Part shown: positions 47,799 to 63,058 of the stretch, piece by piece
How the letters are laid out: each line of letters starts with the position of its first letter
Numbering within the stretch: position 1 is the stretch's first letter
Sequence record: PV158447.1
Length of the DNA stretch: 64,000 nucleotides
Reading direction: 5' to 3' (one strand)
Notes under the pieces: generated by a model
The model's input: the letters and a program-made list of their open reading frames with translations, nothing else
The model's database searches: none
What the model was told of the DNA's origin: nothing
Position numbers and translations under genes: made by a program

Positions 47799-50700
47799 TT
47801 AATTGGTATTGACTCCAGGTGCGGTTTTGCTAGACAGATGTCCATTAATCATATCCAGAAGCCCAACTGCTTGACCCAACAGTTGTTTAACTCCCTCATC
47901 ACTTACATCAATTGTCCCCTTAGGTAGGGTAACAGTTGTTGTAATATCCTTCGGTTTAACCGGGGGAACTGGTTGTGGAAGTTGAACCGTTGGTGTTTTG
48001 GTGGTTGTGGTGTCGGAAGCGGCTTTCTCAGTTGCTTTCTGCTTCTGAGCGGTTTGTTTCACTTCCTGAACACGTTCAGTTTCGGTTCGGGTCGGAGACC
48101 CCAGCCCGTTACTAGCACCAGTTGTGGCTGGTTTAGGTTCCTGAATGGTCTTGGTACTGTCTGCTGCATTCAGAGCATTATCTACCTGGGCTTTCTTACT
48201 GGATTGGTTTTCTCCAGAAATCTTGCTCGGTTCAACGTTCTGATCAGCTGCCGCCGGAATGGGATCAGGTTGAGCTCCGTACGGATCTGCTGAAACATCT
48301 CCCACTGGGACTTGAATGTCTCCATTGTTCAGTTTGTTCAAATAGTCCTGGTAGAACTTACGGCGAGTGTCAGTATCAGGAACGGCATTACCTCCATTAA
48401 TGCCGCGAGCGGCAGTTTCAAAGTTACCTGTTTTCCCAATGTCCATCATCGCCTTGTTGCTCTTCAGGAACCGAACAGCAGATTCTGCCATGATCTTCGG
48501 ATCTTCAGATACCAACTCGGGATTCTTCACCACGTCGACGTCGAGTTCGTTCGCTAGACGTTTGTAGTTATCTTTACCAGTCAGCTGGAAGAAACCACGT
48601 CCACGATACAACCAACCGTCTTCTGGTTTCTCGTTACCCAGAGTAGGGCCTTTTGGAGCACGGCCGTAGACATACATCGCTCGTTCAGGAGCCGGCATGG
48701 CGGCGACTTTCTGGGCGGTAGCCATATCCGGAATGTTTCGGAAATACTTCTTGAGAGTAGGGGCGGACCAGTTGGTATTCTCAACTGTGTTCTGATAGTC
48801 CCCAGTTTCTTTCCGTGCCATCGCCAACCCGAGAGCCAACTGTTTCTTGTCCGTGATTCCGTGTTTCAGCATGGTGTTCAACATGAGTCGTTCACCGTCT
48901 TGGAGAGATAGTTTAACACCATTATCTTCCCCTGCCTTCTTCAGAATCTCCGGATTGTAGTTGGAGTTGTAACCTCCCTCAAATTGACCACCTGGTCCCA
49001 TGTCAGACCAGTTACTTCCTTGCTGACCATAAGCATTTGGCATCCCACCGGCACCAAAACTCATTCCTGACCCACCACCACCTACTCCAACGTTCCCAGC
49101 AGAAGCTTGACGTTGAGTTCCCCAAGCACGATTGAATGCAGAGTTAATTGCATCGGTCCGTTGTTTCTTCTGAACAGAATCTTGGAGAGCCTGAGTTTTA
49201 ACACTCTTACTCTTTTGTTCTTCCAGATCGGGATCTTTCAATCTTGCTTCTGAAGCTTTGCTGTCCAACATGGTTAAGTAGCGTTCAGCTCGACCAGAGA
49301 CAGTACCTGACTTGGAGGAAGGGAAGGGTGACGCTTCAACTTCCCAAACGGAAATGTCTTCACCATCTTTCTCTACCCTAACCGAGGTTAGTTCCCGAGC
49401 CACTTCTACCTTGTTGGTTGCGGAGAGAGCTTGCCAGGCTTTCGCAGGTTTAGCATTACGGAGTTCGTGAACCAACTGAACGTAACGTTTCAAGATAGGA
49501 AGGAAACGGTTGTTAAACCAATCCATCCAGTTCCCTTCTGCCAACGGTTTCTCAATACGGAACATCGGTTTAAAGAGTTCCAGAACCCGACTAGCACTAC
49601 CAGAGAACTTCATCTCAGAACCAGTGGGGTCAATCAGTGCCTCGCAGTAACGTTCCAGCCTAAGCACCGCGTCCACTCGCCACGGCATGTTATCCACGTT
49701 ACCGTAGGCAGCAAGACGAGCAAAAGTGAAGGGATCAATTGGTGTGTCGTTATTCTTGTGCATATCAGAGATGTCAATTTGTTTCACTTCCTCTGGGGAC
49801 TTGAACTTCTTATCAATCTGTTCCTGATACATCTTCGCACTGCTATCACCAAGGAGATCTTGGAAGAAACCAGCAACACCAGTTTTCTTAGGTTCGTTTT
49901 CACCCAGGGCTTTACTCCGGGACTCTTCAGCAGTTAGAAGAGTGAGATCAGCTTCTGGTTTCTTACGTTCCTTCCGCATTTCAGTTAACAACTCGTTCAC
50001 TCGACGCTGGGTTTGGATCTCGGTCATGATCGGAGTGTCAGGAGAGATTTGAACTTGGATAGATAATGGATTAGGATCCATCGTCACCAAGCTACCCTGG
50101 AGTCGTTCACAAACCTGGAGAGATTCCCAGTTAGAGTTCGAGTCGAAATCATTGAGATCCCCGAAACGGCCAATGGATGTCGCTGCATTGTAAAGAAGGA
50201 ATACGGATTTGAAGCGAGCCACAAACCACGTCTTCACCTGATCTTGCAATTCAGGTCCAAGAGAAGCACCGAACTGTTTAATCATTTTCATTACCGGAGC
50301 ATCGTCTCTCAGAGAAGCACGATTCCCACGAATCACAACGTATGGAATCAACCACTGCTCCAACTCGTCGATCTTTATCGCCAGAGGACTGTCTACCTTA
50401 TTCAAACCGTATTGAGCGTAACGGATTTGTTTCTGGAGACTAAACGACTTAGCTGGATCACGGGTTAAGGAAACAGGCGCAACAACTCCATCACGTTCGT
50501 CTTCGTAGCGGTTACGATCTTCAACAGACAAGAAACGTTTCCCATCGTCAGACACGATCTCTTTAGAACCGGTTTCATAAAGACCCAGTGCTTGACCAGC
50601 CATCATCGCAACAGAAGTGGGAAGGTAAAAACTCGCCGCCATTTCGGCCGGTGTCAGTGAGGAAGTATTTTCCTCATCCCGTTTTGCTCGTTCTGCTTGA

Positions 50701-53700
50701 CGAAGTGCGTAAGCATCTTCTTGGGCAGTACGTTGTGGACGGTAGAACTCTCCCTCGTTATCCTGCTGAACGGGTTCATCGGAACCAAAGGCATCCATTC
50801 CATACATCGTCCCGCCAGCCAGCATGGCCCCGCCCAGGATCTTACCAGGCATCCCTAATCCACCGATGGCCCGACCTAGTCGACCGAACATCCCCGGTTT
50901 CCCTCTAGGAACTTTCCCACCTGGTTTACCACGACCACCACCAGTCCCAGGGATATCCCCAGCGGCACCTGCAAGATCACCTGCTGCACTTAGCATCTTC
51001 CCACCAGTGAGTACGGAACCCAAACTAGTGAATCCCCACTTCAACATTTTCATGATGGGAGAAGCAATACCCAGAACGCCTGAGAAGAGCATGGAGCCAA
51101 TCTTGGCCAGTCTGCCAACGGAAGCTGTCAGTGTTCCCACCAAAGCACCACCGATCGTTCCAATGGGGTTCTTAATGAGGTTCGTAATGAACCCACCCAT
51201 TCCACCCAAAAGTCCCATCAGTTTCCCGAAGATCCCTTTTTTCTCTTCCGGTTCTTTCTCGTCTCCTCCTTTCAGAGCAGAAGCGATATCCTTGATAGCA
51301 TTGGAGGTATCGGCACGATCTTTCTCTTTGGCTTTGTTCTGTTTATCTGCGAACGAGTTAAGGCGAACACCACCTTCTGCAAGTTCATCCGCCTCCTCGT
51401 CATTTACAGATATGCCAAACTGTTTGGAGAGTAACGCATAGATCTTGTCAAGACGTCGCTCAACACCACCAGACGCACCTGGAGAACGTTTACCTTGTCC
51501 CTCCGGGGTTTCCTCGGAACTATATCCAAAACGTCCCAGAAGTGAATCTGCGAGCTTCTTGGCGATACCCAAACCAGATGACATCAGTTTACTCGCGCCA
51601 GCACCCGTGTTACGGATAACCTGACCTGTTTCAGTTACCAGTCCATCTTCGAACTCTTGCTGGGTAATAACTTCGTCGCCATCTTCATTGTAGACAGCTC
51701 CATCGATTTCATTCCAACCCATGACAGGTTCGAACTTACCGTTATTATCTTTCCAGTACTCGTGGTTCTTAAATCCAGTTGCTGTTAAACGAGGACGTTT
51801 GGTATTGCTTTTCACGTACACGTTCTGCTGGTAAATGAGTTCCTTACCAAACTGAGCAAAAGCTTTCATTTTCCCAACTGGGTCAACAAAGTTATAAGCA
51901 CCAAGAGCAAGTTCCTTGGCTTTGGTCAAACCAGAGAGAACAACCTCACGACCATCTGGACCAAAGATCTTTTTGGCCAGATCTTTGACCCCAATAGTGG
52001 CCTTGGTAACAGCATCGAAAATAGGACCACGAATGTCACGCCAGGTTTTGATGATGCGCTTGGTAATAGCGTCAAAGTAGTGACCCGCTTTCAACTTGGC
52101 GGATTCAAGGATTGCTTCCCCGTTCTCATCCAGGACGTCTTCATCGTCATTTGGTTCTTGACCTGAACCCATTTGGACAGCGGTTCTGGAGAAGTGTTGG
52201 TAAACCCCACCTACAAGAGCACCGCCGGCAATTGTCGCTGCGGCGAGCAATGGGTTCTCAACGAAACTCGCACCAAGGGTGCCGATTAAAGAACCGAGTA
52301 CCATAGGTTGGTTCTTCATCAGGATATCCATCCCACGACCTAACAAGTTAGTCGGGAGGAGACCTTTGATCTTGCTCATGAAAGAACTGGTCGCTTTCTC
52401 TTCAGCACGTTCTTCATTAACTGTTTTAGCGCCAGTGAGAATCTGACCTTTCTCAGCAAGTTCCACCAGCCTGGTCATCAGAGTTTCAATACCAGTGGTG
52501 CTACCCGCAATACCAGCCAAAGAACTTTCCAACTTCTCGAAACTAGGAAGAGGACTTGCTCGCTGAGAGAAATCATTCTCTTTCAAAACGCCTGAGAGTC
52601 CCGAGATACTCTCATTGAGCTCTTCCAGACCCTTGATGCCCAACGTACCGCCGGAACCACCAGAGGGTGTTTTAGGGCCCTTAGGAAGGACAAAGGAAGT
52701 GGGTGCAGGACCATCCCCTCTGTTAATCCCGCCTTTGAGGATTGGATTGTTAGGATTGTCCATGAACTGACCGATGCGTTCGTGGAATATTTCCATGTTG
52801 ACTTTGTCAGCACCATTCTCGGTATAGATCACTCCCAGGTCTCGGAGCATCTGTTCATTACCAGTTGAACGAAGCAAGTCAATCCGTTCAGCAACATTAG
52901 GGAACAATGTCTTCAGGTTAGCCGCAGCAGCACCTGCTTTATTCAAACGAACGTTAGCTTCTTCTGAACCCATGTCGGTCATAACACGCATTTTGTCGAT
53001 AGCGGTACCATTCTTGAACCGATCGATAGACTCATCTGTCACGTTGAAGTGACGTTTCATCAGCGCGTTGATTTCTTTACTGGCGGTTGGGGAAACACCG
53101 GGAATCTCTCCAACATAAAGGAATGGTGAGAAACCTTTCTCTTTATCCACATCACGAGCGATAGCCTGAGCAAAGGCTTTACGAGTACTCTGACTAAGAC
53201 GTTTCTCTGGATCGAAAGAATCGACCATCTCAAGTGCGGCAGAAGAGAACCGGGAGAAATCAGAATACGGCATCAAATCAGCTTGTACCGAAATGGCTTT
53301 ATTCCCTTGATCCATGAACTGACCACGCATGTAGGAATAGCTGATCTGATCTTTCATTTCCCCAGTGCGGAGACCTTCCACACTCTGGTGGATGGAACTC
53401 AACAAACCTGGCAACACTTCGTTCAGTGTAATGTTGTTCATCTCCTTCCAGATACCTGGTTGGTTCAGATCTTTCACATTACGTTTAGAGATCGTGTACT
53501 GCGTTCCTTTCGCCTTTGTCATCTCTGACATGAATTGGTTAATGGAACTCTTCCCACGGTTCGTGACAGCGTTCTGAACAGTCCAACGCGCTTTGCTGAG
53601 AGGCTGACCTTCCCCTTTGAAGTTATCAAGGTAGTCTTGATAATCCAAATACGGCATCTCATCCAGACTCTCCCAGTTTTCTGCCAGGATGTTAATGAGG

Positions 53701-54917
53701 CCCGTCATGTTGTTAGCGGCATAAGAGGAACGGTTGCCGATGTTACTCAATTTACTGTAACCTTCGGAAAGGCGTTTGGCTTGTTCCGGGTTCTTTTTCG
53801 CTAACTTTTCAATCCATCCTTTACCTGCTCCACGCTCGAAGAAGTAAGGGAGGTTGTTAATTACACTTTCCGCTACGTTCCGACCGATAATGTCTCCGAA
53901 CATCCCTTTGGACATTGGCATGTCTTCCGACATTTCCATCATGTCAACAATGGAGCTCAAGAGGAAGTTAGTTTCTGTATAAGCTTCGTTACGTGCAGAC
54001 TTCCCAAACTTCTCTCGCATCAACCCAGTCAGACCACCTTTACGGTCACCGATGGTGCTGAAGAGTTTATTTCGAGCATAAGCTTTACCGGCAGTGAAAT
54101 GAGAAGTTTTCTCGTAATCACTTTTCCCAGAGTTAATCACAATCTTCTTGAGTTCTGTCACTTCGGTATGAAGTGCTTTCTCCATGAACTTGTAATACTT
54201 GATATCCGCAACGTAAGAACGTGCCATCAAGTTGATCTTACTCTGGTCCATTTTGTATTGGACGTTACGCTGATAGTCAACCAAAGATCGGATGGAGCTT
54301 TCAATTCCCACTAGTTGACGATTACCCGCCATCATGGAGCCATTCAACATGCCGCCAACGGTAGCTGACATCTCATTCAGAGTTTGTCCCAACGCAGAGA
54401 ACATAGAGCTCTGGGATTCCATGGAGTTGCTGATTGCTGCATCTACGTCGTAGTTATTCTCCCGGTCCATCTCTGGCATGGAATCGCGATTCGAACTGGA
54501 ACTATCTTCCCAGTGGGAGAAATCTTTCTGGGAGAACTCCGACATTCCTTCAGACACAAAACCTGGGAGTTTCCCTTCCATTTTGGTGGAGAGCTTGCCA
54601 GCTATGTTTTGTAGGTATTTAACGGACTCAACGTTCTGTTTTTGGAAGTCTTCTTTGATCTCGTCCAGTTTTTCACTGGCCCAAGAAACTTTATCGAGTG
54701 CATTACTGAAACTAGAAGGAAGTACTGTTCGGAGTGTTCTCATTCGAGCAGAACTGCTTCCCACTGTTTCATCAACCAAGCCGGAAAGGAAACCGGAGGT
54801 CGCACCTCCAATAAACCCTTTATTGGCAAATGGATCCATATCAAAATCCATGTCGAGATCAAAATCCCCACCAAAGGGATCATCCCAATCCAGATCAAAA
54901 TCGTCTTTAGACGCCAT
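47799..54917 (-). CDS. Giant tail (tape-measure-like) protein with C-terminal GH19-type lysozyme (phiKZ gp181-like, 2372 aa)
   Basis: DDFDLDWDDPF N-terminus; Gly-rich hydrophobic stretches; KETG...DGWLYRGRGFFQLTGKDNY...INGG. Confidence 0.85.
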   Translation of the reverse strand: MASKDDFDLDWDDPFGGDFDLDMDFDMDPFANKGFIGGATSGFLSGLVDETVGSSSARMRTLRTVLPSSFSNALDKVSWASEKLDEIKEDFQKQNVESVKYLQNIAGKLSTKMEGKLPGFVSEGMSEFSQKDFSHWEDSSSSNRDSMPEMDRENNYDVDAAISNSMESQSSMFSALGQTLNEMSATVGGMLNGSMMAGNRQLVGIESSIRSLVDYQRNVQYKMDQSKINLMARSYVADIKYYKFMEKALHTEVTELKKIVINSGKSDYEKTSHFTAGKAYARNKLFSTIGDRKGGLTGLMREKFGKSARNEAYTETNFLLSSIVDMMEMSEDMPMSKGMFGDIIGRNVAESVINNLPYFFERGAGKGWIEKLAKKNPEQAKRLSEGYSKLSNIGNRSSYAANNMTGLINILAENWESLDEMPYLDYQDYLDNFKGEGQPLSKARWTVQNAVTNRGKSSINQFMSEMTKAKGTQYTISKRNVKDLNQPGIWKEMNNITLNEVLPGLLSSIHQSVEGLRTGEMKDQISYSYMRGQFMDQGNKAISVQADLMPYSDFSRFSSAALEMVDSFDPEKRLSQSTRKAFAQAIARDVDKEKGFSPFLYVGEIPGVSPTASKEINALMKRHFNVTDESIDRFKNGTAIDKMRVMTDMGSEEANVRLNKAGAAAANLKTLFPNVAERIDLLRSTGNEQMLRDLGVIYTENGADKVNMEIFHERIGQFMDNPNNPILKGGINRGDGPAPTSFVLPKGPKTPSGGSGGTLGIKGLEELNESISGLSGVLKENDFSQRASPLPSFEKLESSLAGIAGSTTGIETLMTRLVELAEKGQILTGAKTVNEERAEEKATSSFMSKIKGLLPTNLLGRGMDILMKNQPMVLGSLIGTLGASFVENPLLAAATIAGGALVGGVYQHFSRTAVQMGSGQEPNDDEDVLDENGEAILESAKLKAGHYFDAITKRIIKTWRDIRGPIFDAVTKATIGVKDLAKKIFGPDGREVVLSGLTKAKELALGAYNFVDPVGKMKAFAQFGKELIYQQNVYVKSNTKRPRLTATGFKNHEYWKDNNGKFEPVMGWNEIDGAVYNEDGDEVITQQEFEDGLVTETGQVIRNTGAGASKLMSSGLGIAKKLADSLLGRFGYSSEETPEGQGKRSPGASGGVERRLDKIYALLSKQFGISVNDEEADELAEGGVRLNSFADKQNKAKEKDRADTSNAIKDIASALKGGDEKEPEEKKGIFGKLMGLLGGMGGFITNLIKNPIGTIGGALVGTLTASVGRLAKIGSMLFSGVLGIASPIMKMLKWGFTSLGSVLTGGKMLSAAGDLAGAAGDIPGTGGGRGKPGGKVPRGKPGMFGRLGRAIGGLGMPGKILGGAMLAGGTMYGMDAFGSDEPVQQDNEGEFYRPQRTAQEDAYALRQAERAKRDEENTSSLTPAEMAASFYLPTSVAMMAGQALGLYETGSKEIVSDDGKRFLSVEDRNRYEDERDGVVAPVSLTRDPAKSFSLQKQIRYAQYGLNKVDSPLAIKIDELEQWLIPYVVIRGNRASLRDDAPVMKMIKQFGASLGPELQDQVKTWFVARFKSVFLLYNAATSIGRFGDLNDFDSNSNWESLQVCERLQGSLVTMDPNPLSIQVQISPDTPIMTEIQTQRRVNELLTEMRKERKKPEADLTLLTAEESRSKALGENEPKKTGVAGFFQDLLGDSSAKMYQEQIDKKFKSPEEVKQIDISDMHKNNDTPIDPFTFARLAAYGNVDNMPWRVDAVLRLERYCEALIDPTGSEMKFSGSASRVLELFKPMFRIEKPLAEGNWMDWFNNRFLPILKRYVQLVHELRNAKPAKAWQALSATNKVEVARELTSVRVEKDGEDISVWEVEASPFPSSKSGTVSGRAERYLTMLDSKASEARLKDPDLEEQKSKSVKTQALQDSVQKKQRTDAINSAFNRAWGTQRQASAGNVGVGGGGSGMSFGAGGMPNAYGQQGSNWSDMGPGGQFEGGYNSNYNPEILKKAGEDNGVKLSLQDGERLMLNTMLKHGITDKKQLALGLAMARKETGDYQNTVENTNWSAPTLKKYFRNIPDMATAQKVAAMPAPERAMYVYGRAPKGPTLGNEKPEDGWLYRGRGFFQLTGKDNYKRLANELDVDVVKNPELVSEDPKIMAESAVRFLKSNKAMMDIGKTGNFETAARGINGGNAVPDTDTRRKFYQDYLNKLNNGDIQVPVGDVSADPYGAQPDPIPAAADQNVEPSKISGENQSSKKAQVDNALNAADSTKTIQEPKPATTGASNGLGSPTRTETERVQEVKQTAQKQKATEKAASDTTTTKTPTVQLPQPVPPVKPKDITTTVTLPKGTIDVSDEGVKQLLGQAVGLLDMINGHLSSKTAPGVNTN

Positions 54918-54950: not shown

Positions 54951-56826
54951 ATGAAAAGAGACCCAACTAACTTTACGCTGTTAGATCCAGCGAAGTTCAA
55001 ATGGGAGTTAATGACTCCGGTCACCAGCGGTGACACCTTCGAAGGCCAAACGACCAACTTACATCCAGATGGTTTATACTCGACCGAGATTTTCGGTCGG
55101 GTAGGGACGGATGACCGGGACAAAACTGAGTCCTACATCGACACCATTCTTCCTATCTTTAACCCCACGTACTTTAAAGCACTCGTGCAGTTGAAATCTC
55201 TCTACCTTGAAATTATCAAAGGCAGAGCTTTTGCTGTCTGGGATCCTGATAGTCAGGATTTCATAAAATCCAACGTCTTGGATGGCGACACTGGTTTTGC
55301 TTTCTTTATGTCTCACTTTGGGGAATTGGATCCCAAAGAGAATGACTCCTTTAAACGTTCACAGAAAATCCAGTTAACTCAAGAGTTTAAAGATCGGGCT
55401 TTGCATCGTCGGATTCCTGTTTATCCAGCTGGTTTGCGAGATGTCGAGATCGCTCCCAATGGCGCGGTAATAGAGAATGAAGTTAACGATCTATACCGTA
55501 AGCTCTTTTATCGTTCTCGCTCTCTGAACATCAAGAATCCTGATCAACTGGATCCTGTTTACGATAACATCCGGTGGGGTGAACAAGAAGCCCTGAACAA
55601 CATCGATGAATACTTCTTCGGACTGATGGATGGTAAACGTGGATACATGCAACGTCGTTTGGCACGTCGTTCTATTTTCTCCGCGACACGTAACGTCATC
55701 ACTTCTCGAAAAGTATCTGTAGAGGACATGGACGATGCCCAAACGAATGATCCCAACTCTACCATCATTGGTTTATACCAAGCCCTGTTGGGTTACACAC
55801 TGGTTGCTCAACACGAAATCCTTTCTGGGTTCTTGACTTCTGTATTCACCCCAGGTATGAACAGTGCTCGTTTAGTAAACCCCAAGACACTAGAGAGTGA
55901 GTACGTTGAACTGAACTCTCAGATAGTTGATAAATACACGTCGTCCGATGGTGTGGTAAAATTATTTAACGGGTACGGTAACCCGAGTTTGCGTAATCGT
56001 CCGATCCGAATCAAAGGTCATTACCTGGCTTTAGTTTACGATGATGGTGAACGGGTTTGTTTGCTGAATGACGTTAATGATCTTGGGGAAGGACTGGACA
56101 AGAAGTTTGTTCGTCCTGTAACATATACTCAGTTCTTTTACATGCAAGTAGCAAAGGCAATTGAGAAAAAGATGTTACAGATCACTCGTTATCCCATCAC
56201 AGGGATCGGTTCTATTGTGCCGACACGGGTTTTCATTCTTCCCACCAACGCTTCGTCCAGTAAACGTAAACTGATAGACATTGACGGGACTGAATTGGAC
56301 ATGTTCCATTTCTTCCCGGAACACGACGAGAATCCCTCTTATTTTGACGGGATGTCAATTAGCAACATTCGACTTGAAATGGCTGGTGGTGACTTTGACG
56401 GTAAATAGTTGCCGCTTTCTACAGTAATGTAGATTGAAACTGTGCGGAATGAAGCAAGGAGTCCCTCCATTTAGGGAGAACTTGAACCGAAGGCTAGATT
56501 AACGATTTAGTCAGGGGCAGAGCATAGATGGTGAACCCTCTCCATTAAGAGGAATATAATCCATCCACGAGGCCGCACCACCCTACTGGGGTGAAAACGT
56601 ATGCCGATACTTTCAGCAATGGAAGAGTGAAGATAAAAAGCTTCACATTAACATATTGGACCAATTATCAGCCAACGCCATTCAAGCTCAAGATGCTATC
56701 GACGAAGTTTCTACAATGTTTGGTAAACGCATTTTCTACATCTCTGGAGGAGGAGACTTCTTGTACAGCCCAGTACAGGAGCCTCACGAATTCCTGCTCA
56801 GAGCACTAACTAATGGACTCGACTAA
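54951..56826 (+). CDS. Virion RNA polymerase beta' N-terminal subunit (phiKZ gp180-like); exons 54951-56402 and 56659-56826, 539 aa spliced
   Basis: HPDGLYSTEIFG, IPVYPAGLRD, LMDGKRG, ITRYP, and GGDFDG|DQLSANAI restored by splicing; exon 2 stop overlaps the beta ATG. Confidence 0.88.
56403..56658 (+). ncRNA. Group I self-splicing intron (256 nt, no homing endonuclease)
   Basis: Exon 1 ends in U (GACGGT); intron ends in G; IGS GCCG (56411-56414) pairs with exon CGGU including the U.G pair; P7-like GCATA (56522-56526)/TATGC (56600-56604); removal restores DFDGD in frame. Confidence 0.85.
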
Positions 56827-59800
56827 TGTTTACAAAAGAGCAATTAGGTTTTCCGTTAATCGACGGGAGTGAAGCTGGACAATATTCCCAGTTTCTAAAA
56901 GTCTGGGGAACTCGGGAACGTGTCAACGACATTATCAATCCCAAGAACCCACTGATCGGGGATGTCGTCCTTCCCCGAAATTCGGTTATTCATTATCAAC
57001 AACATCATCCTGGTGAGATGGGTCCGAGTAACCAAGCAGCGTTCATTTCCAATTATGATGCCCAGGTTAACATTTATTTCTGGCCAGATTTCGACGCTCC
57101 ACTTGGGGTCGTTAAGAATGTGCTATTCAACTTCACCAAAGAAATCAAGAAGTATGAATCAGGACATTTCAAGTACAAGCGTGCTCGTAACTACCAAACT
57201 GTGATTGGGAAGCCGGGTGAGTTACTGGTGAACAACATGGCTCTGCGCCAAGTTCCAATCACTTATAACCGCCAGACGTTCTTTACTCCATTCCAGAATC
57301 AATATAACGTTCTCCATAACTTGATTACTGCCGTTAACCAGTTTGCTGTTAATGACATCCATCAGTTTGCAGAATTCCGTTTACCTCGGGTATTTCCGTC
57401 TTACACTCGGCTACTTCAAAGCTTCGAGAAATACAAGAGGTTCTTTGATGATAACGGGAACATTACTCGTTATGAGAAAGAAGCCCTCCGAGATTTCCAG
57501 GCAGACCAGAACTATTGGTTCCTGGATCTCTTTGGGATTCTGATCGGTTACGACGAAGCAAAGTACAGTCAGTTTAATAAACTGAGTGAAAAAGCTCGTG
57601 GACAATTGGAGATGATCTTCACCTATGAAGGTAAATGCTGGATCGTCAATCTTCAAACGCTCATTAACCTGCTGAGTAGTGAAGATAAACCGAACGCTAA
57701 AGGTCCCTCTCCTTCGAAGTACAAATACTTCAAACGTTTCTACTTGGCGCTGTTTAACCTTGTTACGCCTATGGTGGAAGAAATAAAGGAACAAACAAGT
57801 GATGAAGAAAGTGAGGGTTCCAAGGAAACCCAAGAAGGAAAAGGAACTGGGACTGTTGGAAAGGGTGATTCGGCAAACAAGGACAAGGTTCCTAGTACTA
57901 ATCCTAATCCTCTTGCTGATGTTTACATCAACACTAACGGGCCTAGCGAAAGCCCTGTTCCTCCTGTACTGGAACAAACCACTGACGGAAGCGGAGATCC
58001 TGAATCTCCAGATGAAATATGGGAACGAGAAGTTGACGACGCAGTCTTCGAATCTGCCACAGTCGAATCTGCCAGCATCACAACAGGGAAGGTAAAGTAC
58101 GGGCCGACAGCCGCGATTGATCGAATCTTGTCTGAGCGGGCCAGGAAGGGTACTCTGACTTCTAAGGAGAAAGAGTACTTTACCAACATCGCTAACTCTT
58201 ACAAAGACATTGAGTTCGGTGGAAAGTCACTGGAAGAAATTATTAACGTCACTCCAGAAGACTTGAAACTGAAAACAGAGCAGCTCGGTCCCGACTCTCC
58301 GATTATTACCGACAACTCTGTCATGCACTCCCGAGTAGCTCAACTGAGTAATCAGTATCGGGAAGAACTTCTGGAACGTGATATCATCTCTTCTCTGGTG
58401 ATGGGTGCACAATCCGGTGGGTTTGCTGTGCTGGACATGGATCGTGAAACCATCATCACCGCTGAATCCAAGTTTGACGTTTACACCATGAAAGTTCAAC
58501 CAATTCCGGAAGGTAGTCAGAGTACTCGTCGTTTCCGGATCCCTCGGGTGGATGAAGACAACACCTTTACTATCGGTGACGTGAAGATGTACGGCCAGAA
58601 AGTACGGATGGAGATTCCTATTCGGAAAATCAGTCGTACTAAGGTCGCGCTAACTTCTTATTACGATAAGAAGATCATGGTAGAGCGTTCCCCTTATCGG
58701 GTTAATAACTTTGGTGAGTGGTTGAAGAGTAACATCATCCAAAAGAGTTACACTGATAAGAGTCTCTCTATTCAGTTGGGTGGTTACACTCCTTCCCAAC
58801 AGAAGGTCTGTTGGTATTACTCTATCCTAGCCAGTCGTTTCAAGCTAATTGAGAATCCTCAAATTCATTTGAACTTCAACACAGATGAACTGATCGGAGA
58901 CAATAAAGATTGGCGTCGTCTTTGTAATGAAGAGACTTGGGTAGTTGGAGTTGAGGATGGTGTTCCTGTTCTGATTGACAACACGGGTTTAATCACTGTT
59001 GATGGTAGTGAACGCGGGTATGTGGAAGAACTGCTGGGACTACCCATGCACAAAGCACCTGTCCCCAACACCACCATGAATATCAACGGTTACAAGTTCC
59101 AGACCATCGTTGTTCTTTCCTACTGGGTTGGTTTCTCTGAGATTATGAAACGTCTCAAACCGACGTTCCGGATTGTGGAGCCTGGTCAGCGAGTCAATTT
59201 GTCTCCCGACGAGTACATGGTTCAGTTCGCTGATGAACGGTTGGTTTTCAACCGTCGTGAACCGTTAGCCACATTGGTGTTCTCTGGTCTGAATAATCTA
59301 CCTGGGATTCGGAACTTCTCCCGAGCTCAGTTGGACGATCCTTCTGTTTGGTTCTCCATTGTGGGTGATAGTAAAGTCAAACCTTCTCACTTTGGTGAAA
59401 TGAGTCAGATGTTCAACCAGTTCATCGATCCGATGACTGCTCGTGAATTGGTTAAATTGAAAGAACCTCAGGTATTGGACCAGCTGATCTTGAGAGCAAT
59501 TGAGATGCTGACCAATAACGAAACTCTTCCCGAGGTTGAGATCACTGAGCAACGCTTGGTTGGCTACGAGCGTTTTGCAGGGCATGTTTATCGCGAATAC
59601 GTGAAGTCTACTCGTCAGTTCCGGAACAAACCCGGTGGTGTGAAGAAGACCTTCGACCTGAACCCTGAATCGATCATGATGAACATTCTGACGGATTCTT
59701 CTTTCCAAAGTGTCGAGGAAGTAAACCCTGTTCACCAAGTCAAACAGGAAGAAGAAGTCACGTTCGGCGGTTCGTTTGGTCGTAGTGATCAAGCAATGGT

Positions 59801-61133
59801 TCGGAGAACACGTGGACAACAACCTAACTACGAAGGGATTATCTCTGAAGCGGGTAAGGACTCGGGTAAAGTTGGTTTTATCAGTTACTTAACTTCCGAT
59901 CCGAAGATCGCTGACTTGGGTGGTAATGTTAACGTTAAGGAGAAAACGACCAAAGCGGGACGGATGAGTATTACTGGTAACTTGTTGTACGGGACCACAC
60001 GGGATGATACCAAGAGAAGTTTGTTCTCAGGTGTTCAGCTGAGTCAGTGGATGGCCGCCGACTCATACGGACCCAATCCCATTCGCACTTCCTACGACGC
60101 TCAACTCATCTATCGTAACTCAGAACTCTATGGTTCTATTGCGAAACAAGATGGTGTTGTGAAGAGTGTTGATAAATATGGCATCGTCGTCACGTACCAA
60201 GATGGTTCCGAAGGAAAGTTCCCTTTAGGTTATGACATCGGTAAGGGAGCGGGGGAATATCACAAACACAATAAAGTCACTGATGTTAAACCAGGTGATA
60301 AATTTGTGAAAGGGAAGGTGTTGGCTTGGGACGAATGTTTCTTTACTCGTGATGTGGCTGACCCTAATCGTGTTACCACCAAAATCGGAACCATGACTCG
60401 TATTTGGCTGGTAGAAGATCAGTTTACCTTTGAGGATTCCCTGGGGATCGCTAAGGAGTATGCTGACAAGACCAGAACACCTTACGTTAAACAAAACCAT
60501 CTCTCCGCTGCTTTCAACGAACATGTTAATTTGTTCGTTAAAGTAGGTGACCACGTTGAATATGACCAAGTTCTGGCAGAAGTGCAGGATGAAGGCGCTG
60601 CCATGTTCAACGAGTTCAATGATGGAGATATGGTTGGTCTTGATCGATTGGGCGTTAAACAAGAGAAAGCGAAACATACCGGTCGAGTTACCAAGATCGA
60701 ACTGTTGTACAACGGTGATCCGGAAACAGCCACTCAATCTGTTCAGCAGTTGATTAAACAACAGGACAGTTATCGTAGTAAAGTTGCTAACTACAAGAAA
60801 GACACAGCCACCACTGGTTCTGTGGGCGGTCATACTTCTATCGGTAAGAGTAAAATCTATATCGATACGCTGGTTTTGAATATCTACATCGAAGCTGACT
60901 TAGCAACTACCGTTGCGGATAAGTTTGTTGCGGGAAACCAGATGAAAGGTACCGTTGCCTATATCTACCCGAACCCGATCACCACCCCGGACGGTCGGAT
61001 AGTGGATATGACGTTCTCTGTGAAGTCGTTGCTGAACCGAATGGTATTGAGTCTTCGTGATAAACTAGTTGGTAATGAAACAAACTGGGTTTACACTCAT
61101 CGATTGATTAACAAATATGGGAGATATGATTGA
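56826..61133 (+). CDS. Virion RNA polymerase beta subunit, N-terminal part (phiKZ gp178-like, 1435 aa)
   Basis: QQPNYEGIISEAGKDSGKVG, SLFSGVQLSQ, FTFEDSLGI, ADKFVAGNQMKG; synteny with gp180/gp181-like genes. Confidence 0.88.
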   Translation: MFTKEQLGFPLIDGSEAGQYSQFLKVWGTRERVNDIINPKNPLIGDVVLPRNSVIHYQQHHPGEMGPSNQAAFISNYDAQVNIYFWPDFDAPLGVVKNVLFNFTKEIKKYESGHFKYKRARNYQTVIGKPGELLVNNMALRQVPITYNRQTFFTPFQNQYNVLHNLITAVNQFAVNDIHQFAEFRLPRVFPSYTRLLQSFEKYKRFFDDNGNITRYEKEALRDFQADQNYWFLDLFGILIGYDEAKYSQFNKLSEKARGQLEMIFTYEGKCWIVNLQTLINLLSSEDKPNAKGPSPSKYKYFKRFYLALFNLVTPMVEEIKEQTSDEESEGSKETQEGKGTGTVGKGDSANKDKVPSTNPNPLADVYINTNGPSESPVPPVLEQTTDGSGDPESPDEIWEREVDDAVFESATVESASITTGKVKYGPTAAIDRILSERARKGTLTSKEKEYFTNIANSYKDIEFGGKSLEEIINVTPEDLKLKTEQLGPDSPIITDNSVMHSRVAQLSNQYREELLERDIISSLVMGAQSGGFAVLDMDRETIITAESKFDVYTMKVQPIPEGSQSTRRFRIPRVDEDNTFTIGDVKMYGQKVRMEIPIRKISRTKVALTSYYDKKIMVERSPYRVNNFGEWLKSNIIQKSYTDKSLSIQLGGYTPSQQKVCWYYSILASRFKLIENPQIHLNFNTDELIGDNKDWRRLCNEETWVVGVEDGVPVLIDNTGLITVDGSERGYVEELLGLPMHKAPVPNTTMNINGYKFQTIVVLSYWVGFSEIMKRLKPTFRIVEPGQRVNLSPDEYMVQFADERLVFNRREPLATLVFSGLNNLPGIRNFSRAQLDDPSVWFSIVGDSKVKPSHFGEMSQMFNQFIDPMTARELVKLKEPQVLDQLILRAIEMLTNNETLPEVEITEQRLVGYERFAGHVYREYVKSTRQFRNKPGGVKKTFDLNPESIMMNILTDSSFQSVEEVNPVHQVKQEEEVTFGGSFGRSDQAMVRRTRGQQPNYEGIISEAGKDSGKVGFISYLTSDPKIADLGGNVNVKEKTTKAGRMSITGNLLYGTTRDDTKRSLFSGVQLSQWMAADSYGPNPIRTSYDAQLIYRNSELYGSIAKQDGVVKSVDKYGIVVTYQDGSEGKFPLGYDIGKGAGEYHKHNKVTDVKPGDKFVKGKVLAWDECFFTRDVADPNRVTTKIGTMTRIWLVEDQFTFEDSLGIAKEYADKTRTPYVKQNHLSAAFNEHVNLFVKVGDHVEYDQVLAEVQDEGAAMFNEFNDGDMVGLDRLGVKQEKAKHTGRVTKIELLYNGDPETATQSVQQLIKQQDSYRSKVANYKKDTATTGSVGGHTSIGKSKIYIDTLVLNIYIEADLATTVADKFVAGNQMKGTVAYIYPNPITTPDGRIVDMTFSVKSLLNRMVLSLRDKLVGNETNWVYTHRLINKYGRYD

Positions 61134-63058
61134 TGAACAATCGTGAAACTTTTGGGGTGAAAACTATCCAAAGTCTTCTGCGAGAAGTTGGTCTCTATGG
61201 AGGGCGTATTGACGCCCTCTTTGGGAAGGGCTGTGTAGAAGGCATTAAACAGCTGGTCGCTAATGCGAATCCCAACTACAATCCACTGATTACTGTTCCG
61301 GTGATGGATCGTGCTCCTGATATCTTTAAGTGGGTACAGGAATACATTGTTCGGGCCGGCATGGCTCCAACTGACTTTAAGGTGGACGGTTTCTGGGGTT
61401 CTGGTACGGAAGGTGAACTGAAGAAGTTGGTTAACCTTTATGGTGTGAAGAACAACATTCCGGAATACAGTTACGCTTGGACTGCACATCCTCGTCTTAC
61501 TAAGGACGTGGTAGAGAAAGTAGAGAAGTGGATGGAGAAGTGGGGTAAACCACTCTATCATGTAAACTACCTATTCAGTTGTATCGCACTGGAAACGGGC
61601 AAGACTTTTGATCCTGCAATAACAAATCCTCATAGCAAAGCTTGCGTCGACACTGAAACCGAAATTCTCACCACAACCGGATTTAAAAGGTATGACGAAG
61701 TTAATGTAGGTGACGCTATTTGGTCTTTCAATTCTGAGAAAGAAGTGTTTGAAAGAGACGTGATTTTGGACAAAATTGTGAAGCCAAGTGAACACAATTA
61801 CGAGATGTCTTCGAGATCATTCTCCGCGTTGTCCAGTCACGACCATAGATGGTATTTGTGGAAGCGTTTTTTCTGTAGGACTGACAACACCCCAGAGTAC
61901 ATTGTTAAAACTTCTGAGGAAATGGCTGATCTGAAAACCTCGGCACATCACTCGATCCCACATCCAAGCGTGAGTTATGTAATAGGAAATAAAGGAACTT
62001 TCGTGGGAAATCGAAAAATTTACAAACTCCTCGGATTACTAGCCGGTGATGGTTCCATTTCCGTTAAGCACAAGAGGGTTGAAATGAATTGTCATTCATA
62101 TAAGACCCCCTGGGAAATGGCTGCCATGCTGGACTGTTTAGAAAACTTATTTGACGAGTCAGAATACACATTACGTGACATGGGTCACGAAATGGTACGC
62201 TGGGGATTTAAATCTAAAGCCAGTGAGTACATACTTTCATTTTTTGATACGGACTACAATAAAGATAGAAAAGGTCCGTTTATCAAAAAGATAAAACCAT
62301 CCGTACTCTCTCAAATGGGTTTCTTGGAGGCAAAAGAACTACTCGATGGTTATATGTGTTCTGATGGTCATAGGTCGAATATAAACAACACTAGATCGTT
62401 CCGTAATACTAGAAAAGAGATTATTGATGATTTCATGTTTACCGCCGTCATGGCTGGGGAAAACCCTAGAGAAGTTACGGTCCAGAGACGAGAGGGAGGT
62501 GTTCACACATTTCCTGGGGGAAGAGTTTGTAACATAAAACCTATACACACGGTCTATCTCAGGATGTATGATAAAACATCCTGTATGAAGGCGCAGTTGA
62601 AAGTAACCAAAAATACCGACAAGATAACAGTTTGGTGCCCCACCACTAAGAACAGCACTTGGGTAGCTAGACGGAATGGAACAGTCTACATAACCGGAAA
62701 TTGTGGTCTGATACAGTTCATGCCAAAGACAACGATGCCGGATCTTGGTGTGACTGACGATCAGCTCAAAGTGATGTCAGTTTATGACCAGCTGGACTGG
62801 GTCTTCAAATACTTTGAAAAGTACGGGTACATTAAGAAGTGTGCTCGACTGGAAGATTATTACCTTTCTATTTTCTATCCTGCCCATGTAGGGAAAGATC
62901 CGAACCTTGTCGTAGGGAAAGAAGGAACCAAGTTGTATAACCAGAATTCCGGTTTCGATTCCGAGAAGAAAGGTTATTACACTGTTGGTGATATCGGTGC
63001 TGCGGTAAGTTCTTTCTACTGGGAAGGGATGGCTCCAGAAAAACGTTTAGTCAAATAA
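61133..63058 (+). CDS. Modular endolysin (two PG-binding repeats plus lysozyme-like/SLT domain) interrupted by an intein; 641 aa precursor, 288 aa spliced
   Basis: IQSLL...IDALFGKG and VQEYI...VDGFWGSGT repeats; ALETGKTFDPAITNPHSKA|CGLIQFMP; TGATG overlap with beta. Confidence 0.85.
   Translation: MNNRETFGVKTIQSLLREVGLYGGRIDALFGKGCVEGIKQLVANANPNYNPLITVPVMDRAPDIFKWVQEYIVRAGMAPTDFKVDGFWGSGTEGELKKLVNLYGVKNNIPEYSYAWTAHPRLTKDVVEKVEKWMEKWGKPLYHVNYLFSCIALETGKTFDPAITNPHSKACVDTETEILTTTGFKRYDEVNVGDAIWSFNSEKEVFERDVILDKIVKPSEHNYEMSSRSFSALSSHDHRWYLWKRFFCRTDNTPEYIVKTSEEMADLKTSAHHSIPHPSVSYVIGNKGTFVGNRKIYKLLGLLAGDGSISVKHKRVEMNCHSYKTPWEMAAMLDCLENLFDESEYTLRDMGHEMVRWGFKSKASEYILSFFDTDYNKDRKGPFIKKIKPSVLSQMGFLEAKELLDGYMCSDGHRSNINNTRSFRNTRKEIIDDFMFTAVMAGENPREVTVQRREGGVHTFPGGRVCNIKPIHTVYLRMYDKTSCMKAQLKVTKNTDKITVWCPTTKNSTWVARRNGTVYITGNCGLIQFMPKTTMPDLGVTDDQLKVMSVYDQLDWVFKYFEKYGYIKKCARLEDYYLSIFYPAHVGKDPNLVVGKEGTKLYNQNSGFDSEKKGYYTVGDIGAAVSSFYWEGMAPEKRLVK
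61643..62701 (+). mobile_element. Intein with LAGLIDADG homing endonuclease (353 aa)
   Basis: Block A CVDTETEILTTTGFK, block B SSHDHRW, LAGLIDADG motifs LLGLLAGDGS and LLDGYMCSDG, block F VWCPTT, block G YITGN followed by Cys+1. Confidence 0.92.

Follow-up and report, generated by a model that had tools for sequence, protein, structure and literature searches.

Inteins are known mainly from enzymes of replication, repair, and nucleotide metabolism and, in phages, from the terminase and portal genes. The LAGLIDADG inteins with solved structures (PI-SceI, TliVMA, PhoVMA, PI-PfuI, and PI-PkoII) have a common architecture, in which a double-motif endonuclease is inserted into a HINT splicing domain; they are encoded in ATPase and polymerase genes of yeast and archaea and have Asp at position 4 of block F (F:4) and a penultimate His. 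A second point of reference is class 3, which is defined by the absence of a nucleophile at position 1 and whose members, such as Bethlehem DnaB, Msm DnaB-1 (DnaBi1), Mch DnaB1, and AceL NrdHF, carry a Trp/Cys/Thr triplet and are generally without the block-B Thr; the Gp206 intein of mycobacteriophage Catera is also listed in this class. Of the 37 triplet-bearing inteins in a 2009 analysis of InBase, 3 begin with Ser or Cys, and later wording states that an N-terminal nucleophile is "not required". Here, we describe an intein encoded in a 64,000-nucleotide stretch (the window) of record PV158447.1, the 232,884-bp genome of Aeromonas phage AhC3_1. This jumbo phage infects Aeromonas hydrophila, and the window matches its genome with 100% identity. 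The intein interrupts open reading frame (ORF) 66, which encodes the precursor of an endolysin resembling EL188 of Pseudomonas phage EL, a biochemically studied modular enzyme with an N-terminal peptidoglycan-binding domain and transglycosylase specificity. All coordinates refer to the window and to its forward (+) strand, unless stated otherwise.

An in-frame insertion in an endolysin gene

ORF66 (61133..63058) encodes 641 amino acids from its ATG in a reading frame that is uninterrupted for 641 codons, although the program-made ORF list starts it one codon upstream, at the TTG at 61130. The record annotates the product as a "hypothetical protein", which is a misannotation. The first 170 amino acids (61133..61642) and the last 118 amino acids with the stop codon (62702..63058) are the N- and C-exteins, and the 353 amino acids between them (61643..62701; precursor residues 171–523) are the intein, a HINT splicing domain into which a LAGLIDADG homing endonuclease is inserted. 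The intein begins with CVDTETEILT and ends with VYITGN, and the next residue is Cys (62702–62704). The host is a lytic transglycosylase, in which the motif with the catalytic Glu, ALETG, precedes the intein and the GLIQFMP motif follows it. Removal of the intein yields a protein of 288 amino acids, which aligned without a gap across the junction to the solved lytic transglycosylase 9udh (E = 1.5e-24), with …NPHSKA/CGLIQFM… in the spliced protein (the slash marks the junction) opposite …NPNGSA TGLIQFM… in 9udh. The alignment was similarly gapless at the junction for the intein-less orthologs LAh10_150 (290 amino acids), AerS_266, and EL gp188, of which LAh10_150 is encoded at the same place, after the virion RNA polymerase gene. 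As expected of an intein, the insert is in frame, is absent from the orthologs, and leaves a continuous host protein when it is removed. The initial annotation of the stretch, made from the letters alone, had placed a 353-amino-acid intein (Cys1 … ITGN, followed by Cys+1) with two LAGLIDADG motifs between a putative catalytic Glu and GLIQFMP, with a peptidoglycan-binding and lysozyme-like product of 288 amino acids; its coordinates and boundaries were correct, and its other descriptive elements were confirmed. An assembly artefact was also considered and was ruled out, because the contig of a metagenomic relative (P0001), from an independent sample, has the same architecture and gene order.

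Once the intein is removed, the product has the features of an EL188-type endolysin, with N-terminal binding repeats, a catalytic Glu and GLIQF in the C-terminal domain, and a conserved gene neighborhood. The N-extein contains the peptidoglycan-binding repeats and the first part of the transglycosylase domain, and aligned to EL gp188 and LAh10_150. Its match to Pfam PG_binding_1 was weak (E = 0.0026), and both repeats (IDALFGKGCV, 61208–61237; VDGFWGSGTE, 61382–61411) fit the consensus given in the literature for EL188 and KZ144 (D-G-Pho-Pho-G-K/N-G/N-T). The putative catalytic Glu (E154, 61592..61594), within the IALETG motif at 61583–61600, was invariant in 16 of 16 aligned homologs and aligned with the Glu of FETG in EL gp188 and 9udh. 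In EL188, E155 is reportedly the catalytic residue, for which no confirmation was found in the literature consulted. The C-extein opens with CGLIQFMP and continues with the remainder of the transglycosylase domain; the PHROG matches over precursor residues 522–638 were only to "baseplate hub" families or families of unknown function. In a tblastn search, the spliced protein was 36% identical to EL gp188 over 100% of its length, and the same gene order was found in EL and AhC3_1: two RNA polymerase genes, the lysin, a small ORF, two virion proteins, and the head protease. In terms of sequence and synteny, the 288-amino-acid product is the ortholog of EL188, the characterized endolysin of phage EL. 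The two-domain layout is that of EL188 and KZ144, and the catalytic Glu of EL188 is in the same motif; on the other hand, EL188 and the other sequenced homolog records (231 without AhC3_1) are uninterrupted, whereas the AhC3_1 gene is interrupted. A muralytic role in lysis is established for EL188 in the literature and is predicted by orthology for the ORF66 product.

The interruption of a lysis enzyme, which the initial annotation had already considered unusual, appears to be without precedent in the sources covered: our literature search turned up no phage endolysin or lytic transglycosylase reported to contain an intein, none of the 224 endolysins in a study of mycobacteriophages is stated to be interrupted, and the word "lysin" is absent from a survey published in 2025 that covered nearly 800 inteins of actinophages. 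Inteins are also not mentioned in the paper that describes AhC3_1. What is new is the host protein and the unannotated intein, and the kind of element is already well known. Lysis enzymes act outside the cytoplasm and are needed only when infection ends, which makes them intein hosts of a different kind; the example shows that it is conserved catalytic motifs, and not the functional class of the protein, that intein targeting follows. The motif is a recurrent target: in different phages, inteins occupy two separate sites, one on either side of GLIQFMP. Furthermore, a naturally split EL188-type lysin is a possible starting point for self-activating lysin constructs.

Family and catalytic residues of the intein

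The AlphaFold model of the intein, which was based on a 41-sequence alignment, had a predicted local distance difference test (pLDDT) score of 93.8 and a predicted template modeling (pTM) score of 0.92. In Foldseek, this model matched four inteins best (TliVMA, PI-SceI, PI-PfuI, and PhoVMA; E = 3e-14 to 6e-11), and LAGLIDADG enzymes of the I-DmoI type and mini-inteins came next. Compared with the solved LAGLIDADG inteins as a group (E = 3e-14 to 4e-7), the template modeling scores were 0.51–0.63 at sequence identities of 9–12%, and the profile match to PI-PkoII covered the endonuclease part. The AhC3_1 intein has the same architecture as these inteins, but differs from them in its Cys at F:4, its penultimate Gly, and its host, a phage endolysin. 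A profile built from the splicing domain alone matched three HINT domains of solved structure, namely a bacterial intein-like (BIL) domain at E = 4e-6, the mini-intein Spl DnaX at 1e-4, and the intein AceL NrdHF at 3e-4, and block B was in register in all three alignments. The predicted model, its structural matches, and the profile matches all indicate a HINT fold.

A HMMER search with the intein against 1.84 billion representative proteins identified 1750 proteins at E ≤ 0.001, of which 189 reached E ≤ 1e-10, and the best homologous inteins were at E = 1e-118. The typical match spanned the first ~75 and the last ~25–140 residues of the intein, and the part between them varied, a pattern to be expected when splicing blocks surround exchangeable endonucleases. 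The host proteins of the family included DNA polymerase A, portal proteins, large terminases, prohead proteases, methylases, and MCM, and in sequenced phages they were TerL, portal protein, DNA polymerase, and a thymidylate synthase, the last annotated as intein-containing. On the basis of sequence similarity, the family of the intein is large, with 1750 representative clusters, and is carried mostly by phages. Curated models contributed little to this assignment: Pfam LAGLIDADG_3 scored 19.9 bits, below its cut-off of 22.5, a single-sequence search of the PDB with the intein found no intein family, and a search of PHROGs found no match. As these searches were unproductive, intein membership was established from the homologs, the profiles, and the fold. 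The curated intein models of Pfam and NCBIfam thus miss a phage-borne family of at least 1750 representative clusters, and inteins of this family are likely to be under-annotated in phage genomes generally.

The residues required for splicing were conserved throughout the family when nine positions were read across about 235 intein copies in 207 retrieved proteins. Block A (CVDTETEILTTTG; 61643..61681) begins with Cys1 (61643–61645), which was present in 235 of 235 copies. Block B (61835..61852; S65-H-D-H68-R-W70) contains the TxxH motif, with Ser in the AhC3_1 copy at B:7 (Thr in 215/230), together with His at B:10 (227/231) and Trp at B:12 (212/231). Cys332, at F:4 (62636–62638) in block F (VWCPTTKNSTWVA; 62630..62668), was found in all 237 of 237 copies, and block G (TVYITGN/C; 62681..62704) contains Thr351 at G:5 (226/235), the penultimate Gly352 (227/235), the terminal Asn353 (232/234), and Cys+1 (49/49 where this position was aligned). 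The ORF66 intein consequently has a nucleophile at position 1 (C1), S65-x-x-H68, the terminal N353, and C+1. Each of the two LAGLIDADG helices ends in an acidic residue: motif 1 (LLGLLAGDGS; 62027..62056) contains the catalytic Asp136, with Asp in 14 of 15 transglycosylase-borne copies, and motif 2 (LLDGYMCSDGH; 62339..62371) contains the catalytic Asp241, in an Asp–Gly pair (D241–G242) that is nearly invariant. The predicted fold matched I-DmoI and PI-SceI, the LAGLIDADG_3 score was below the Pfam cut-off, and the endonuclease is likely to be active. Judged from these residues and the predicted fold, the insert is a real and probably functional self-splicing intein.

The initial annotation had remarked on Cys1, Cys+1, and the penultimate Gly. 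All three are present, but the Gly is the norm of the family and a known variation of phage inteins, not an oddity, and a third invariant Cys, at F:4, had been missed together with the class 3 triplet to which it belongs (W70, C332, and T351 in the published numbering). These residues agree in part with each of two classes. In favor of class 1 is the combination of a Cys, Ser, or Thr at position 1 with TxxH, whereas the Asp at F:4 and the penultimate His that are typical of this class, although not obligatory, are replaced by Cys332 and Gly352. The triplet is that of class 3, and yet the original definition of this class, which excludes a standard N-terminal nucleophile, is contradicted by the invariant Cys1. 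Because the family combines this Cys1 with the triplet and a penultimate Gly, the AhC3_1 intein may splice by either the class 1 or the class 3 route.

In a class 3 or relay reaction, Cys332 would attack the N-terminal junction or take over the acyl group from Cys1, forming a branched thioester at block F before transfer to Cys+1, and Cys1 would be dispensable or only the first relay station. Such a route would account for the conservation of the complete triplet (W at B:12 in 212/231 copies, C at F:4 in 237/237, and T at G:5 in 226/235) and for the 21 residues from Cys332 to the terminal Asn, a spacing identical to that in the class 3 inteins Msm DnaB-1, Mle DnaB, and Bethlehem DnaB (MP-Be DnaB). 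It is also compatible with the published triplet inteins that begin with Ser or Cys (3/37) and with the relaxed wording on the N-terminal nucleophile, and the class 3 AceL NrdHF intein was among the three best splicing-domain matches to solved structures. However, a dispensable Cys1 would be expected to drift, and it was invariant in 235 copies; the class 1 Thr at B:7, generally absent from class 3 inteins, was retained in 215 of 230 copies; the grafting of the triplet onto a class 1 intein has been reported to be insufficient for class 3 splicing; and the splicing-domain profile was no closer to class 3 than to class 1 or BIL domains. We therefore regard a class 3 or relay route as a possibility to be taken seriously, although not as the probable one. 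Hundreds of copies with both Cys1 and the triplet constitute a natural system in which to ask whether class 3 splicing arose via a two-thiol intermediate.

This catalytic signature is uncommon, yet it has already been noted in the literature. The family has the triplet, the spacing, and the phage association in common with class 3 inteins, but differs from them in its invariant Cys1, class 1 Thr at B:7, and penultimate Gly, and in its +1 residue, which is Cys at one insertion site in the transglycosylase gene (site a) and Thr at another (site b). The triplet inteins with Ser1 or Cys1 in the 2009 analysis combine a standard N-terminal nucleophile with the triplet, as this family does, but none has been reported in a lysis gene. 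The family also has members in sequenced phages: the inteins of the Gordonia phage GordTnk2 TerL, the Corynebacterium phage P1201 thymidylate synthase, and Gordonia Woes-like portal proteins are full-length homologs with 23–27% identity, which also have Cys1, Cys at F:4, and a …GN end with a penultimate Gly. The GordTnk2 intein additionally has Trp at B:12 and Thr at G:5, whereas that of P1201 has Met and Ser at these positions, and all of them differ from the AhC3_1 intein in occupying the usual phage target genes and in having Thr or Ser at +1. The gp51 intein of mycobacteriophage Bethlehem, like that of AhC3_1, has a natural penultimate Gly, and its replacement by His impaired splicing; it differs in being classified as class 1 and in its host gene, and, as far as the available part of its description goes, no block-F Cys is reported.

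Distribution, mobility, and insertion sites

The codon usage of the intein deviates from that of the phage. AGR codons accounted for 15 of its 22 Arg codons (68%), compared with 120 of 639 (19%) across the window's long ORFs (Fisher p = 1e-6), and for none of the eight Arg codons in the exteins; ATA accounted for 8 of its 19 Ile codons (42%), compared with 78 of 851 (9%) in the long ORFs (p = 2e-4). The AGA/ATA-rich composition that the initial annotation had described is thus real; GC content was 0.413 in the intein, against 0.448. We read this deviant codon usage as a sign of horizontal acquisition. When the spliced protein was searched with tblastn, 232 phage records were found, 69 of which had one place covering ≥80% of its length, and a tblastn search with the intein located it in this gene in only one of the 232, AhC3_1 itself. 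The closest sequenced relatives, AerS_266, pAEv1810, AVP1, D9, and D6, have no intein, at an extein identity of 70–74%. As both catalytic Asp residues are conserved and the close relatives are intein-less, homing into the intein-less alleles of relatives, as suggested in the initial annotation, is plausible.

On the other hand, the intein was present in the metagenomic relative P0001, the closest carrier, with the same gene order as in AhC3_1. Independent acquisition by these two phages was considered and dropped, because their inteins are 52% identical, no less than some of the flanking genes (50–81%). In more distant carriers, the intein was 45–53% identical (splicing domain, 51–64%), whereas the transglycosylase domain was only 33–43% identical, and this higher conservation suggests transfer of the intein between alleles. 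The position that becomes +1 is occupied by Arg, Val, Tyr, or Thr in the intein-less orthologs and by Cys only in the carriers, as expected if homing brings its own +1 codon.

In total, 25 of the 207 retrieved proteins were transglycosylases with an intein of this family; the carriers other than AhC3_1, about 25, are metagenomic, and the inteins were located at two sites. At site a (…GSGA/C…TGN/CGLIQFMP), the intein was found in AhC3_1 and 16 others. Site b (…GLIQFMPx/C…ITGN/TAxxLGTT) is eight residues downstream and uses a native Thr as the +1 residue, and its inteins are ~30–34% identical to the AhC3_1 intein. The site-b proteins P0070–P0076, P0078, P0081, and P0117 are metagenomic, and some of these hosts are multidomain proteins of 940–1070 amino acids. 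Two phiKZ-like metagenomic contigs (L003:10001–11602 and L092:8001–9599) encode an intein-bearing short transglycosylase without a binding domain, between genes with the phiKZ internal-head-protein domain; in these contigs, packaging or ejection of the enzyme may be more apt than a role as an endolysin. As some site-a carriers are short transglycosylases among phiKZ-type internal-head-protein genes, the host enzyme is not necessarily an endolysin in every phage. A scan of IMG/VR with the family alignment gave 80 loci, and translation of 10 of them and a junction-pattern scan of all 80 revealed only intein-less transglycosylases. The exact degenerate junction pattern TGN/CGLIQF had no matches in IMG/VR and only three chance matches in bacterial genomes, in short or unrelated ORFs. 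These empty scans indicate that the intein-bearing allele is rare outside the large protein collection.

If the ORF66 intein had decayed, or were a self-cleaving BIL-like HINT domain, ORF66 would be dead and lysis would be carried out by another enzyme. That ORF66 is unannotated, that the curated intein models miss the intein, and that a very large gene for a cell-wall hydrolase, ORF63, is nearby are all compatible with this scenario. However, the catalytic positions are intact (C1, S/T-x-x-H, C332, N353, and C+1), the frame is open through 641 codons, the exteins are 71–74% identical to functional relatives, and 15 orthologous carriers have the same splicing residues and intact exteins. BIL domains are described as being without a +1 nucleophile, which ORF66 has. 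A dead gene is accordingly a very remote prospect. Furthermore, AhC3_1 was isolated and propagated as a virulent phage, with double-layer agar titers and a one-step growth curve in its own paper, and we count its viability in favor of a functional intein.

Splicing, lysis, and the neighboring genes

We consider it highly probable that a selfish homing intein has settled in a motif that the enzyme cannot lose, which would make splicing a precondition for endolysin function. In this account, a mobile intein would have invaded the EL188-type endolysin gene of AhC3_1, and the 641-amino-acid precursor would be translated with 353 foreign residues parting the ALETG segment from the substrate-cleft motif GLIQFMP. 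Folding of the HINT domain would bring the two junctions together, a thioester would form at Ala170–Cys171 via Cys1 (class 1 route) or the block-F Cys332 (class 3 route), and the N-extein would be handed to Cys+1. Cyclization of Asn353 would then free the intein, and an S-to-N shift would create a normal peptide bond (…HSKA-CGLIQFMP…), giving the active endolysin of 288 amino acids. The freed double-motif LAGLIDADG endonuclease would cut the intein-less alleles of co-infecting relatives, and repair would copy the intein into them (homing). The intein would persist because it occupies a site from which the phage cannot delete it imprecisely.

Several points weigh against this account. Splicing, its chemical route, and DNA cleavage are inferred from the gene sequence and a predicted fold, and a second endolysin of AhC3_1, which may be encoded outside the window, would relax the need to splice. 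The pair formed by AhC3_1 and P0001 is compatible with vertical descent, given that the identity of the inteins is within the range of the flanking genes, and the higher conservation of the intein relative to the exteins could partly reflect constraint rather than transfer. In addition, no intein model in Pfam or NCBIfam matched the intein; we attribute this to sequence divergence and do not consider it an argument against intein membership.

The initial annotation had gone further, proposing that splicing is conditional on redox state, zinc or another metal, or temperature, and that it gates the endolysin post-translationally as a lysis timer. Three invariant cysteines in one active site would suit such a role, and the literature describes inteins with cysteine-based redox traps, one of them a class 3 intein trapped through its block-F Cys, as well as a modulation of the splicing rate by the penultimate Gly in phage inteins. 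The precursor, split at the catalytic cleft, would also probably be inactive until spliced. Nevertheless, the same residues are present in the family copies in polymerases, portals, and terminases, which makes the cysteines a family trait and not an adaptation to lysis; no feature of the sequence is specific to regulation; and the close relatives lyse without an intein. In canonical holin–endolysin lysis, moreover, the holin sets the timing, and active endolysin builds up harmlessly in the cytoplasm. We consider a lysis timer improbable for these reasons. A more elaborate scheme, in which the family is a mechanistic hybrid (a thiol relay from Cys1 to Cys F:4 to +1, or initiation by either thiol), splicing is sensitive to oxidation or zinc, and the endolysin is a zymogen gated by the state of the infected cell, seems to us similarly unlikely.

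Two neighboring loci are of separate interest. Directly upstream of the RNA polymerase genes, ORF63 (47799–54917, − strand) encodes 2372 amino acids and is annotated as "cell wall macromolecule catabolic process"; its counterpart by position in LAh10, LAh10_147 (~2350 amino acids), is annotated as "putative endolysin". ORF63 is probably a virion-associated wall-degrading protein, and as such a second muralytic activity in the region.

The second locus is an intervening sequence of ~256 nucleotides (56403–56658) between ORF64 (54951–56408) and ORF65 (56826–61133), which interrupts the gene for the N-terminal part of the virion RNA polymerase β′ within its catalytic metal-binding motif, DFDG/D. 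Exon 1 ends with …GGDFDG, its last base being T, and the frame resumes at 56659 (DQLSANAIQ…) and continues to 56826 as an unannotated 56-amino-acid ORF; the uninterrupted LAh10_148 reads …GGDFDGDQLSANSIQ… at the split motif. A search of Rfam, for the window at the gathering threshold and for the local region at E up to 10, gave no match, including at 56403–56658, and tRNA scans found nothing. The boundaries of this candidate intron, with U before the sequence and G at its end, are compatible with group I, and its fold z-score was −2.7. In the related Aeromonas phages CF8, ZPAH34, ACP1, PS1, and PS2, the same gene contains the sequence with 80–84% conservation, and its core also matched unannotated DNA of Yersinia phiR1-37, Klebsiella phiKp_32, a Raoultella phage, and Listeria LIS04.

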